This document shows positions 11,459-40,147 of a stretch of 64,000 nt of DNA, piece by piece. The notes beneath the pieces were generated by a model, which was not told where the DNA came from, searched no databases, and saw only the letters and a program-made list of their open reading frames with translations. Within the stretch, counting starts at the first letter, position 1. Every line of letters starts with the position of its first letter. The position numbers and the translations under genes are program-made. This stretch comes from Macrostomum lignano (taxonomy: Eukaryota), in assembly GCA_002269645.1 (NCBI GenBank), contig NIVC01001811.1, positions 186,001 to 250,000 of the forward strand. The letters are read 5' to 3'.

Positions 11459-12619
11459 CTACTCGTTGCACACCTGTTGCAGCCGCAGAAACTCTGTTTT
11501 ATTGAGAAGTTTCGTGCTCAGCGCAAAGCACAGCATGCTACCTTTTAGACAGGTTGCATCGCTTGATGACGAGCCGAGTCGCAGGCACTGAAACACCACG
11601 TTTGATCGATCAAGAGGGGCATTTGAAGTTCGTGAAACTCCGACCAGCGATCCGTTTTGGTACACGCGCTGGTGTCCGTTCCGGTCGAAGGTAACCCCAG
11701 CAGAGAACAGGTGCTCAGCTCCGTCAACCGGCAGAAAATAGCTCGAATAGCCGTATATCTTCTCACCAACAGTACCGTCAGCGGACAGCCAGGCATAGCC
11801 GTAAAAGTAATCATCATTCTTGATGAGCGAGCAACCAATGCCACTGCCCGAGCACGCCTGGAACCTGCTGTAGTACTGTCTCCTGCAGTGATAGCATTCT
11901 CATGGTCAAGCACTACGAAATGCATGTACGAGCTAATCTATCTGCTCAAGTCTAGCGAAAACGACTCACCCGCTAGTAAAAACGTGCCGAACCTGAGCAA
12001 AAGTCGAGTAGGTGGAACCGACTCCCAGAAACTTCTCAAAACCGGGAGTCTCAGTGCTCAGATAGGAGCCCGTGTTGCCCTTGAAGTGAGCACCAGCTGC
12101 ATCAACTGTTACATCGTGAGCCTTGAGACAGGACATTCTCGGGTTGACCTCATTCTTCAGACCGCTCCGAGAGAACTTGTAGAACAGCTTCAGCTTGAAC
12201 TGTTTCACCAAGGGCTCAGAAGACTCTGCAGTGATAAATTTATAATCAGTTTAAACAAAGTAAATGATTTCATTGGAGAGACGCAGAGCTGTCAAGACAG
12301 CAGCCGCTGAGCCGCTCACCGCAGTCTCCGCACAGCACATCGGTGTACTTGTAAGAGTCGCGCAGTCGCCGTCAGTCCATTGCTCGAGTTGAGAACACGC
12401 GTCTCCATGGTAACACAGGCGGGTGGTGATGTCGAAGTGGAATGCGTTGCAGGTGAGCAGGCGGGAGCAGGCGGCGGCGCACTGCAGCTTGCTGGCCAGG
12501 CGGTGCGGCAGCGGAGAGGCGGCCGCGGTGGGGCAGCGTCGGGTCTTCTCGAATGACAGCTCAGCAGCAGCAAGTCTGAAAGAGACCAGTAAAAGAAGCA
12601 GAGCTAAAAAATAATTCAT
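11459..12619 (-). pseudogene. PAN/Apple-LamG family copy A, frameshifted in exon 1
   Basis: Exons 12619-12320, 12225-11970 and 11882-11459. A 2-nt insertion near 12360 (GACTGCGCGACT versus GACTGCGACT in the other copies) shifts the frame. Exon 3 is open: QYYSRFQ...AGVTFD...RVYQNGSLVG...FQCLRLG...LKGSMLCFALSTKLLN. Confidence 0.8.
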
Positions 12620-13552
12620 CCTAGCTTGGAGTTTACTCAGCTTCGTCAGGGCTTAGTTTCAATCGATGCCTGCTGATTCACTCAATTGCTCTCTATTTTA
12701 CCTTTATAGGAAAATCTGACTCGTGCTGGCTTATTTGATCACCTCTGCCTTCTAGCTGGTTGCAAATTCAGAAAAGTTGAGTTTCTCTTTGTTTTGTACT
12801 CAGCAAGTATCGATGCTTTTATCAAAAGCATGGATGTCAGGCCTGACAGCAGCATGCAGAATGTCAAACAATATGAAGCATTTTTGTTTGAACAGCGACT
12901 GTATCCTTGCATGTATTTTTAAAAAGCTAACTGGAATTGAAGCGACCCGAATCAAACGCAAATCCGACAATTCTGAAGGCGGGACGCGCAGTTTTGCTTG
13001 CATCAGGCAAGGTGGAAATCGGAACAAGTAAGAGTTATACATTCCTCTGCAGTCGGGATGCATGATAGCTATTGGGTAAAACATCCCACGCCTGCCTCCG
13101 ATTCGGCACCGTCAGCCAATTTTTATCAAGTTCCCAATAGGTTTTAGGATATTCCAATACATTCGTTCGAAGTTCGAAGTCGGTAGTAAACCAGAGATTA
13201 ATTTTGAGATGCAAAAAATGCGACATTTATTCGAATAGACGCCATGGTCACTGCTCCAGTATATGAAATTTCGATTTCACAATTAGAACTCTGAATACTA
13301 AGTTTGCGCGTACCTATTCAAAGGGATTCTGTAAACATTCCATTTGAGAATTGTGGCAATTGTCTGAGGCGTGAGAACTGTGCGTGTTTTAAACAATGGA
13401 CAAATATATGTAGGTGCTTGAAGGACACTCAGCAATGAAGTTTTTACACAGCTAACAAATTCACATTTATAAATGTAGGATGGGTTGCCTTTTGAACCAT
13501 TTTAATTTTGGAGCAGTTAGTTTGATTTGAAAAGTGTCTGCTCATACAGGAA

Positions 13553-14735
13553 ATGAAAAGGATTCGACTGTCGACTCTGCCCTGCCTCCTGCTGCTCAGC
13601 TGCCTGCTGGCGGCGACTTCAAGCGCCAAGGTGCTGTCGAACTTCGCCGCGGTCAAGACCCGACGCTGCCCCACCGCAGCCGCCTCTCCGCTGCCGCACC
13701 GCCTGGCCAGCAAGCTGCAGTGCGCCGCCGCCTGCTCCCGACTGCCCACCTGCAACGCATTCCACTTCGACATCGCCACCCGCCTGTGTTACCATGGAGA
13801 CGCGTGTTCCCAACTCGAACAATGGACTGACGGCGACTGCGACTCTTACAAGTACACCGATGTGCTGTGCGGAGACTGCGGTGAGCGGCTCAGTGGCTGC
13901 TGTCTTGTCAATTAATCTGTATCGCTCCAATGAAGTCATTTGCTTTGTTTAAATAGATTATGCATTTATCACTGCAGAGTCTTCTGAGCCCTTGGTGAAA
14001 CAGCTCAAGCTGAAGCTGTTCTACAAGTTCTCTCGGAGCGGTCTGAAGAATGAGGTCAACCGGAGACTGTCCTGTCTCAGGGCTCACGACGTGACAATTG
14101 ATGCAGCTGGTGCTCACTTCAAGGGCAACACGAGCTCCTACTTGAGCACTGAGACTCCCGGTTTTGAGAAGCTTCTGGGAGTCGGTTCCACCTACTCGAC
14201 TTTTGCGCAGGTTCGGCACGCCATGACTAAGGATGAGTGAGTTGAAACTGTCTGTGATGCTTTGAAACCGCTGCTCACCTTCTAGCCGCGCCTCTACCGC
14301 TGCACAAGCAGGTATCAGTACTACAGCCGGTTCCAAGAGTGCTCAGGAACCAACATCGGCAGCTCTCTGATCAAGCGCTCAGAGTATTTCTACGGTTTCG
14401 CCTGGCTGTCCAGCGGCGGCGGGAGTGTCGGCGAGAGAATTTTCGGATTTTCGTCTTTTTTTCTACCGACTGATGGCTCGGTGCGTCTCCTGTCGGCTGG
14501 AGTCACCTTCAACGGGCTGGAGCAGAAGCACATGTATCAGAACGGCACGCTGGTTGCGACGTCTTCGTTTAGTAAAAGTTCTTTGAATTCTTCAGCGGCG
14601 TCCTTTCAGTGCCTGCGACTCGGATTCGGGCCCGCAAGTGACAGATGTCTGAGCGGCACAATGAGTTGCTTTGCACTGAGCAGTGAGATGCTCAACGAGT
14701 CTGAGTTTCGGCTGCTCCAGCAGCTCTGCTACTGA
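13553..14735 (+). CDS. Secreted PAN/Apple + LamG(ConA-like) protein, copy B, 336 aa
   Basis: Exons 13553-13880, 13978-14236 and 14312-14735 (phases 1 and 2, GTGAG donors, CAG acceptors). Hydrophobic leader; PAN pattern [23 protein letters not shown]; LamG-like pattern LFYKF...HFKGNTSSY...STFAQV...AGVTFN...HMYQNG...LRLG...LSGTMSCF...ML.ESEF..L. Confidence 0.85.
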
Positions 14736-37761: not shown

Positions 37762-38994
37762 ATCACAGATGAAGCACCACGGTTAACTCAAGTGAAACGA
37801 ATCTTTTTATTACATTTTAACATCCAACTACCATTAGAAATATTTCTTCGTAGTACTCAGGTAGAAGTTAATATCTCTGCTTTTCTAAAAATTATTTTAA
37901 CTATAATCTGTCGTTGCACTACGACTATATTTTGTTAAACCATGCAGAGTCGATAATGCCTGCTTACACCCATTTTTCTTATCTAATTAAATATCTGAAT
38001 CCATTTATTATGATTAAAACACTAAAATATTTTTTGTATATCAGCCAGGAAAAATTAACAATCAAAAGTACTATAAGCACTTGCACTCTCCTAGCAACCT
38101 TTCTAAAACTCACAATTTTAACTTGAGCAGCATGGGATATTTTAAACAATTAATTTTACCAATAAAAAAGTTTACGATTTTGTTCAAATTAGATATGAAT
38201 CTAAGCAATGAAACTGATTTTTCTAACCGTCTCTCGGTCTCGAACCAGACGCTGCTGACGGTCGACGATAAGTCCATGGTGAGCAAGATTTTCAGAGGAT
38301 GACCACCAGTTGAGGTTTGCCCACTGTGGAGGCTTGATCAACGAAACTATAGAGAAACTCGCAACAGGTTGTCCATAGTCACCTGGTGCCGCACCTGTTA
38401 AAGGTCCAGAAGCTCTACCTGGTTGAGGGCCAGTGACCAATAAAGTCAGAGCTGATGCAGGCTGCACATTCGGTTGACATGATGATGAAGTTAGGAGGCT
38501 GGGGACTTGATTCTTGGTTGAGCAACAAGTTTGCGCATCAAAGAGTAGCACGCGTCTTCTTAAATTTCGTGCGCTTGCGATACTCTGTTCCGACGCAGAC
38601 AAAAAATTGTCAGGGTGAATCTCTCCTCCCCCTTAATTGCCGGTAAAAATCTCTAGTCTAAAGCACAGGCTCAGGTTTCGTTTCTTGTTCAAGACTCACT
38701 TCATGGTACATGTAAGAATCAATCAATGTCAAAGTCACACTGAATACATGAATGCACATTAAAACTCAGTCAAGCACGTGACAAAAACAATTCAGACGAA
38801 TAGCTGGTGCGCTCAGTTAATCTTAAACGAAGCCTTTGAGATTCTCTTGGCTGACTGGACAACCAATAAAAGCAGGGCCAGCTAAATAAATAATTGCTAA
38901 ATTCAAATCGATACAACTTATCTTGACTAAACTTATAAACCGCATGGTTAATACTTTGGACTGGCACAAACTGAGCAGGAAGCCACAGACTCAA

Positions 38995-40147
38995 ATGAGA
39001 GTGCTCTGCCTCCTGCTGCTCAGCTGCCTGCTGGCGGTGACTTCAAGCGCCGAGGTGCTGCCGAAATTCGCAGCGACAAAGACCCGACGCTGCCCCACCG
39101 CGGCCGCCTCTCCGCTGCCGCACCGTCTGGCCAGCAAGCTGCAGTGCGCCGCCGCCTGCTCCCGACTGCCCACCTGCAACGCATTCCACTTCGACATCGC
39201 CACCCGCCTGTGTTACCATGGAGACGCGTGTTCCCAAATCGAGCAATGGACTGACGGCGACTGCGACTCTTACAAGTACACCGATGTGCTGTGCAGAGAC
39301 TGCGGTAAGCGGCTCAGTGGCTGCTGTCTTGACAGCTCTGCGTCTCTCCAATGAAATCATTTACTTTGTTTAAATTGATTATGCATTTATCACTGCAGAG
39401 TCTTCTGAGCCGCTGGTGAAACAGCTCAAGCTGAAGCTGTTCTACAAGTTCTCTCGGAGCGGTCTGAAGAATGAGGTCAACCCGAGACTGTCCTGTCTCA
39501 AGGTTCACGATGTGACTATTGATGCAGCTGGTGCCCACTTTGCTGGTGAAACAAGCTCCTACCTGAGCACCGAGACTCCCGGGTTCTGGAACTTTTTATC
39601 GATGAACCGAGAATTCTCAGCGTTTACTAGAGTCAGACACCCTTTTGGCATTGGGTACCACATTTTTTTCAAAATAATTTTTTCAATGTCAAAGTCGTCT
39701 GTAACTCTGTAACTCGACACTTATCATTATTTCAGCTATCAGTTCTACCACAGATTCCAGCAGTGCAACGGAAACACGGGAAACACTTTTGCTAAAAACA
39801 ACGACTACATCTACAACGGAGCTGTACTCAGCAACAATGCTGTGCTGTTCTCATTGTCGCCATCATTTCTACCCTCCGGTGGCATGCAAAAAGAGATTTC
39901 AGTTGGTTTCACATTCAACAGAACTGCACATCAGCAATTCTTCTTCAACGGCTCCATCGCTCCGGTTTTCTACGCCTACTCAGAGGCGAACTCTTATTCG
40001 ACAAGTCTGTTCGAGTGCCTTCGCCTGGGCCAATCGCTGGTTGATGCCAACTGTCTCAACGGTGTCATGGTATGCTACGGATTCAGCGCAAAAGTACTGA
40101 GTGCCAGCGAGTTTGAGCAGCTCCAGCAGCTCTGCGACTCCGATTGA
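38995..40147 (+). CDS. PAN/Apple-LamG family copy G, 325 aa
   Basis: Exons 38995-39304, 39399-39654 (weak GTACCA donor, but the same 256-nt length as most paralogs) and 39736-40147. Confidence 0.8.

Follow-up and report, generated by a model that had tools for sequence, protein, structure and literature searches.

The window analysed here is a 64,000-nt stretch of the genome of the free-living flatworm Macrostomum lignano in which seven tandem paralogous genes (A–G) fill positions 11459–40147 (~29 kb), the outer limits being the stop codons of A (11459) and G (40147). The genes are predicted to encode small secreted proteins, in which a PAN/Apple domain is followed by a concanavalin A (ConA)-like jelly roll, and they share a nearly identical tract of ~510 bp. 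To build the gene models, the seven oriented loci were aligned and GT..AG boundaries were then placed. All seven copies comprise three exons, interrupted by a phase-1 and then a phase-2 intron, and exon 2 measures 256 nt except in B and E, where it has 259 nt. Intron 1 (93–105 nt) has the donor GTGAGC, but GTAAGC in G, and the acceptor CAG. Intron 2 (75–127 nt) uses the donors GTGAGT, GTGAGA, or GTAAGT, with a weak GTACCA in G, and CAG or TAG acceptors. The six-frame list of open reading frames (ORFs) across the array contains only short recurring exon-sized fragments. An earlier note on this DNA had described the same seven paralogs, exon structure, and limits, as well as the fragmentary ORF track, and both the alignment with its exon boundaries and the ORF list bear this description out. 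The note also expected a product of ~325–355 residues from each copy. This expectation holds for the five copies with uninterrupted frames (B, 336; C, 355; D, 332; E, 337; and G, 325 residues), although the length of C includes an extension abutting a retrotransposon, and it fails for A and F, which carry frameshifts. The phase-1 intron falls exactly on the boundary between the PAN/Apple domain and the jelly roll. Polyadenylation signals were found for A, B, D, and G, that of B being an AATAAA located 118 nt 3' of the stop codon, while a search within 400 nt of C detected none.

The shared tract runs from the mature PAN exon through intron 1 and extends ~190 nt into exon 2; any two copies are 91–98% identical over it. 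Averaged over all pairs of the seven copies, DNA identity rises from 0.42 in the 5' flank and the region of the signal peptide to 0.96 in the mature portion of exon 1, stays high in intron 1 (0.90) and over the initial ~190 nt of exon 2 (0.94), and drops to 0.55 in the exon 2 tail, 0.40 in intron 2, and 0.51 in exon 3. The tract boundaries are consistent in all seven copies. Synonymous divergence (dS) follows the same division, with values of 0.02–0.19 in the 140-codon core, while the C-terminal part exceeds 0.8 or has reached saturation in all pairs but E/F (0.11). The 400 nt upstream of the seven genes exhibit no detectable mutual similarity. The copies are old, as divergence has reached saturation in their promoters, in intron 2, and at synonymous positions of exon 3. 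Since intron 1 is as conserved as the flanking codons, constraint at the protein level cannot explain the tract. Purifying selection on the protein alone was accordingly rejected as the cause of the constant core, as the synonymous sites are equally conserved.

The relationships among the copies conflict between segments. In the signal-peptide region, B, C, D, and G fall together. In exon 3, A, B, and C group loosely and E and F tightly (94% identity), with D and G standing apart and D being the most divergent. The core of D is 97–98% identical to those of B and C, yet its exon 3 is just 41–44% identical to theirs. A protein not encoded in the window (UniProt A0A1I8GWZ0, denoted as P0001) carries the same PAN sequence beside a diverged jelly roll. 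Within the array, A/B and C/D form head-to-head inverted pairs, and C/D constitutes an inverted repeat of 586 nt with 95% identity and arms 1.2 kb apart. An origin of C/D from A/B duplicated as a unit was rejected, as the intergenic regions have no similarity. The GC content of the exon 1 core is 0.65, versus roughly 0.38–0.55 across the window, which would be compatible with GC-biased conversion. We infer from this pattern of identity that gene conversion has probably recurred over ~510 bp in old paralogs. The tract is newly described here, and partial concerted evolution appears to be the most notable property of the family. The ratios of nonsynonymous to synonymous substitution rates (dN/dS) are 0.15–0.62 in the core and, where measurable, 0.29–0.57 in exon 3, showing the imprint of purifying selection on the copies.

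Exon 1 encodes a signal peptide followed by a six-cysteine PAN/Apple domain. Every product contains one hydrophobic segment, at the N-terminus: the Kyte-Doolittle-19 value reaches at least 1.6 only within residues 1–40, its maximum past residue 45 is no higher than 1.14, and the polar C-termini provide no hydrophobic signal of the glycosylphosphatidylinositol type. Because of this single N-terminal segment and the polar C-termini, the products are predicted to be secreted, soluble, and unanchored, with a putative cleavage site, in line with the signal peptide and lack of an anchor described earlier. The N-terminal domain was compared with the PAN/Apple framework C...CxxxC.....C...........C....C, a module of ~70–90 residues. 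Across 11 aligned N-terminal domains of the family, C28, C32, C38, and C50 are invariant, C10 is nearly so, and the sixth cysteine (GxC) is present in most. When a profile of 11 diverse members was searched against all PDB sequences, 32 of the 33 matches were PAN/Apple proteins, including all those with E below 1. They include the fungal oxidase 6ryx, which carries PAN modules (E 1.6e-7), Toxoplasma MIC4 (TgMIC4; 8.5e-6), Sarcocystis SML-2 (1.9e-4), and the HGF N domain (0.05), together with factor XI and kallikrein. Sub-threshold PAN_1 matches occur in 13 of 18 family members, the best relative, P0012, scoring 21.3 bits against a cut-off of 21.4. In the AlphaFold model of copy B, this region displays a beta-alpha-beta arrangement of strands 33–40, 67–73, 78–83, and 91–101 and helix 54–62, with a predicted local distance difference test (pLDDT) score of 79–93. 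The cysteine pattern and the profile matches support the assignment of the N-terminal domain to PAN/Apple, as the earlier note had proposed.

Exons 2 and 3 together encode a ConA-like jelly roll of ~220 residues and Laminin_G_3 type. Copy B was modelled with a diverse 18-sequence alignment, since six close sequences alone gave a pLDDT of 42. The resulting model, with a pLDDT of 84.7 and a predicted template modelling score (pTM) of 0.78, is confident across the exon 2/3 junction and contains a low-confidence linker (residues 101–110) at the exon 1/2 junction. Residues 121–319 form a 15-strand sandwich with pLDDT values mostly of 83–98 and one 10-residue block at 67. A Foldseek search against the PDB yielded 225 matches at E<=1e-3. 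The top matches are the receptor-binding (Hc) domains of the botulinum and tetanus toxins (E 1e-8, probability 1.0), with a sequence identity of 10–16% and a query-normalised TM-score of ~0.45 over ~240 columns of the 336-residue query. The sequence profile of the C-terminal domain reaches the Hc of botulinum neurotoxin weakly (E 0.013). For Laminin_G_3, the highest score among the relatives (27.4 bits, P0017) falls just short of the gathering score of 27.6, and the domain is matched at E<0.1 by 4 of the 18 members. The predicted structure supports a ConA-like jelly roll for the C-terminal part, again as described earlier. The neurotoxin resemblance lies at the level of the fold, within the Concanavalin A-like superfamily, and is not evidence of toxicity. 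The closest jelly roll in structure is the N-terminal half (HCN) of the clostridial receptor-binding domain; the neurotoxins also have a beta-trefoil HCC domain and a toxin context, both of which the window proteins lack. Pentraxin membership was rejected, as none of the seven products contains the signature HxCx[ST]Wx[ST] in a regular-expression search.

Searching 1.84 billion cluster representatives with a profile returned 21 relatives at E<=1e-3. All 16 named relatives are uncharacterised M. lignano proteins, labelled as Apple domain-containing, as Lectin_legB domain-containing, or with spurious names, several of them being fusions with adjacent genes. The same search yielded no neodermatan, planarian, or non-flatworm relatives. 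A word-index protein search returned only 2–4 relatives, the closest again from M. lignano. The remaining five relatives (P0009, P0010, P0013, P0018, and P0020) are short ENA/JGI metagenome fragments, each corresponding to exon 2 or exon 3 alone; their extents would fit the same intron positions in environmental relatives. Two metagenome scans for these five fragments gave no match. M. lignano proteins in UniProt and NCBI (A0A1I8GWZ0, A0A1I8ILW3, A0A267E973/PAA58135, A0A267DNP4/PAA50913, and A0A1I8H603) belong to the same family, with profile E values from 1e-162 to 1e-4. These relatives share the order signal peptide–PAN–jelly roll and the C-terminal motif LG...L.G...C.G......EF..L..LC, and the genome annotation of M. 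lignano at NCBI lists diverse relatives under PAA accessions. As far as the databases reach, these results support the view that the family is lineage-restricted and unnamed, which agrees with the earlier suggestion of a lineage-specific group outside the named families.

The public gene models of the family are irregular. The first 52 residues of UniProt A0A1I8HM75 (P0002, M. lignano) are identical to E, after which the protein is 97% identical to residues 105–281 of D (177 residues) and skips most of the PAN domain. P0002 is therefore a mis-joined model, either of this cluster or of some twin. The UniProt M. lignano models P0002, P0003, P0005, and P0007 are truncated, chimeric, or fused to neighbours, the fusion partners being an inositol phosphatase, an ankyrin/channel-like protein, and a protein that UniProt labels as CUB domain-containing; P0003 contains two tandem family units within one model. 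No protein search returned a correct model of any of the seven window genes, and neither the two exon ORFs looked up nor P0001 was on record. A literature search for Macrostomum with PAN, Apple, or LamG, or for the family gene identifiers, found nothing, and the identifiers were absent from three supplement sets.

Several parts of the array are damaged. Exon 1 of A contains an extra 2 bp (GC) within 12351–12370, causing a stop after 106 codons, and exon 1 of F has lost 2 bp (TG) within 34319–34336, causing a stop after 98 codons. Manual repair of the frameshifts restores products of 325 residues for A and 343 residues for F. Because both indels sit at dinucleotide repeats, slippage mutation and assembly error are both possible, and A and F are either pseudogenes or assembly errors. 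The frame of C runs 22 codons beyond the position of the stop in B, which accounts for its length of 355 residues, and ends 11 nt inside ORF1 of a full-length long interspersed nuclear element (LINE) with two intact ORFs. ORF1 of this element (279 residues) starts at 22394, overlaps C by those 11 nt, and has no Pfam match, and ORF2 (1272 residues) contains the Pfam domains Exo_endo_phos_2 (APE endonuclease), RVT_1, and RNase_H. A 21-nt tandem repeat of ~18 copies (16783–17155; consensus TTTTAGCGCCGCAGGCACTCA) lies 3' of the LINE and yields long spurious ORFs in several frames. The earlier note had missed two exon-3-like relics of the family; no exon 1 or exon 2 was found upstream of either. 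The relics belong to a tandem segmental duplication of ~3.3 kb, the two copies of which are 94–97% identical in blastn. A 15-nt tandem array has 13.6 copies after F (35471–35674), versus 5.6 at the matching site after E (29426–29509).

The flanking housekeeping genes place the array in a normal eukaryotic chromosomal context (Table 1). An alpha-2-macroglobulin/thioester-protein (TEP)-like neighbour is of an innate-immunity type, and its proximity to the array may be a coincidence. Short-period tandem repeats at 52322–53384, 60890–61186, and 63160–63996 produce long repetitive ORFs. The sole Rfam match in the window is a distant, borderline tRNA at 44350–44419 on the minus strand (29.4 bits versus a gathering score of 29).

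Table 1. Positions of the array genes, the homogenised tracts, and other features in the window
Feature	Position	Strand	Details
Copy A	11459..12619	-	exons 12619-12320, 12225-11970, 11882-11459; exon 1 frameshift
Copy B	13553..14735	+	exons 13553-13880, 13978-14236, 14312-14735; intact, 336 residues
Copy C	22384..23635	-	exons 23635-23305, 23210-22955, 22864-22384; ORF intact, 355 residues
Copy D	24789..25960	+	exons 24789-25098, 25193-25448, 25528-25960; intact, 332 residues
Copy E	28009..29254	+	exons 28009-28336, 28442-28700, 28828-29254; intact, 337 residues
Copy F	34073..35299	+	exons 34073-34419, 34513-34768, 34873-35299; exon 1 frameshift
Copy G	38995..40147	+	exons 38995-39304, 39399-39654, 39736-40147; intact, 325 residues
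Homogenised tract A	12032-12544	-	
Homogenised tract B	13658-14171	+	
Homogenised tract C	23017-23527	-	
Homogenised tract D	24876-25386	+	
Homogenised tract E	28114-28635	+	
Homogenised tract F	34199-34706	+	
Homogenised tract G	39082-39592	+	
LINE retrotransposon	17737..22394	-	between B and C; 5' end abuts 3' end of C
Exon-3-like relic 1	31265..31553	+	tblastn with products; frame change between 31324 and 31326
Exon-3-like relic 2	37446..37734	+	tblastn; duplicate of relic 1; internal frameshift
Tandem segmental duplication, copy 1	28817..32104	+	E exon 3, its 3' flank, relic 1
Tandem segmental duplication, copy 2	34862..38285	+	F exon 3, its 3' flank, relic 2
FANCD2 exons	375-9081	+	
GINS/Sld5-like exon	9996-10478	+	
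Listerin-like E3 ligase	54378-62075	-	UBC-like and RING
Alpha-2-macroglobulin/thioester-protein-like exons	42023-43985	-	TED domain, E 9.5e-9; ~2 kb beyond G
Retroelement integrase ORF	45913-47464	+	rve domain; probably fragment of a long terminal repeat retrotransposon

The explanation that accounts best for these observations, and that we consider probable, is a Macrostomum-restricted family of secreted PAN and jelly-roll proteins with a converted constant tract, the products being putative binding proteins with a variable remainder. Checks of the spliced proteins against Pfam and by structure prediction, as the earlier note had advised, gave sub-threshold PAN and Laminin_G_3 matches and a predicted ConA-like jelly roll. 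Several points weigh against this explanation. The splice junctions are predictions based on GT..AG sites, an unbroken frame, public models of homologs, and the structure given by AlphaFold. No window copy reaches the Pfam gathering scores of PAN_1 and PAN_4 (21.4 and 27 bits; window copies, 16.0–18.8 bits) or that of Laminin_G_3 (B, 17.4 bits). Because all its Pfam matches are sub-threshold, the family has no precomputed domains. The PAN fold of the N-terminal domain is a putative one, read from the full-length model. The array is also partly decaying, as seen in A, F, the two relics, and perhaps C. Furthermore, no dN/dS value above 1 occurs in the core or in the C-terminal region, the sole ones long enough to weigh, and exon 3 varies in strands and loops alike, whereas a tuned binding site would be expected to concentrate the differences in its loops. 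Loop-focused hypervariability was rejected on this ground.

In the mechanism that we propose, recurrent gene conversion, aided by the inverted pairs A/B and C/D, would homogenise the tract and thereby create mosaic relationships among the copies. Conversion would halt at points where the copies have diverged too far or where selection favours their being different. The products would act as soluble extracellular binding proteins, in which a constant module consisting of the PAN domain and the first jelly-roll strands may dock to a common partner or matrix. The variable rest of the jelly roll would make binding differ between paralogs, each of which may be expressed from its own promoter. The target may be microbial, dietary, matrix, or mate-derived, and the role in immunity, mucus, or reproduction suggested by the earlier note is a candidate one. 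A stronger version, in which the converted PAN module engages one effector or matrix partner while the jelly roll diversifies under separately evolved promoters to form a constant/variable recognition repertoire, is distinctly unlikely. It stays a minority possibility because the differences in exon 3 extend to the strands as well and no sign of positive selection could be detected. If it were true, innate recognition would employ a pair of domains not so used in any described phylum.

Known systems provide partial parallels to the proposed architecture. The apicomplexan microneme proteins TgMIC4 and SML-2, factor XI/prekallikrein, and the HGF N domain share the cysteine framework of the window domains and are extracellular binding modules. 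In these proteins, Apple domains form tandem repeats or are combined with a protease or kringle, and no ConA-like jelly roll follows. The window PAN domains have three cysteines more than the microneme, factor XI, and HGF modules, and their scores do not reach the Pfam gathering threshold. At the level of the array, the snail FREPs, amphioxus VCBPs, and sea-urchin 185/333 proteins are likewise encoded in tandem lineage-specific arrays of secreted two-module proteins with shared and diverged parts, and gene conversion shapes such arrays as well as families under partial concerted evolution. The FREP and VCBP folds differ from those of the window proteins, consisting of immunoglobulin superfamily and fibrinogen domains or of V-type immunoglobulin and chitin-binding domains. 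In the window family, by comparison with these three systems, no positive selection is detectable.

Among the other explanations, a reproductive role is unlikely, although it fares best. The products would be seminal-fluid, female-tract, or eggshell proteins, whose variable half evolves rapidly under sexual selection in a hermaphrodite. In favour of this role, the family is secreted, lineage-restricted, and fast-diverging. Many prostate-limited secreted Macrostomum transcripts lack homologs or recognisable domains (PMC5977470), and reproduction-related genes of Macrostomum evolve faster than others (PMC7336406, PMC8662610). However, the family gene identifiers are absent from the supplements searched, and dN/dS is below 1 wherever it could be measured in the core and C-terminal regions.

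Structural or adhesive secretions of mucus, rhabdites, cement, or adhesive glands, in which the role of the domains would be glycan cross-linking and not the recognition of foreign targets, are an improbable alternative. PAN and ConA-like folds are established binders of glycan or protein in extracellular matrices, and the 15 cysteines of mature B, an odd number, would allow intermolecular disulfides. The proteins are nevertheless small, without the repeats or low-complexity regions typical of adhesives and mucins, and an adhesive function leaves the combination of one constant and one diverging half unexplained. Equally improbable is a mostly decaying, non-functional remnant, whose constant core would be a mere by-product of conversion between inverted and tandem repeats. 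The two frameshifted copies, the LINE at the 3' end of C, and the exon-3 relics fit such decay, as do the absence of the exact products from the public gene calls looked up and the chimeric public models of the locus. On the other hand, five copies remain open over three exons, all splice sites and conserved cysteines are kept, dN/dS is 0.15–0.6, the spliced product is modelled by AlphaFold with high confidence, and diverse NCBI-annotated relatives exist elsewhere in the genome. An origin of the nearly identical core tract in faulty assembly or polishing of a repetitive, polyploid genome is very improbable: M. lignano assemblies are repeat-rich and the two 2-bp indels could be errors of a like kind, but the tract still differs by 2–9% between copies, its boundaries recur in all seven, and A0A1I8GWZ0, from outside the window, combines the same PAN sequence with a divergent jelly roll.

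Invertebrates commonly possess lineage-specific arrays of secreted lectin-like proteins, so that the mechanism proposed for the present family is unsurprising; the family combines known folds with a familiar genomic pattern. The analysis should nonetheless be useful to flatworm genomics, as it supplies correct gene models, as predicted here, for a locus whose public annotation consists of fragments or chimeras. A further outcome is the definition of an unnamed architecture restricted to Macrostomum, consisting of a signal peptide, a PAN/Apple domain, and a ConA-like jelly roll, which spans at least 21 clusters at 50% identity. M. lignano is tractable by transgenesis and RNA interference, and the analysis offers a testable hypothesis, in which a shared docking module would be coupled to a divergent binding module. 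The sharp-edged tract of ~510 bp, which spans an intron within saturated paralogs, would represent a clean natural case of partial concerted evolution.

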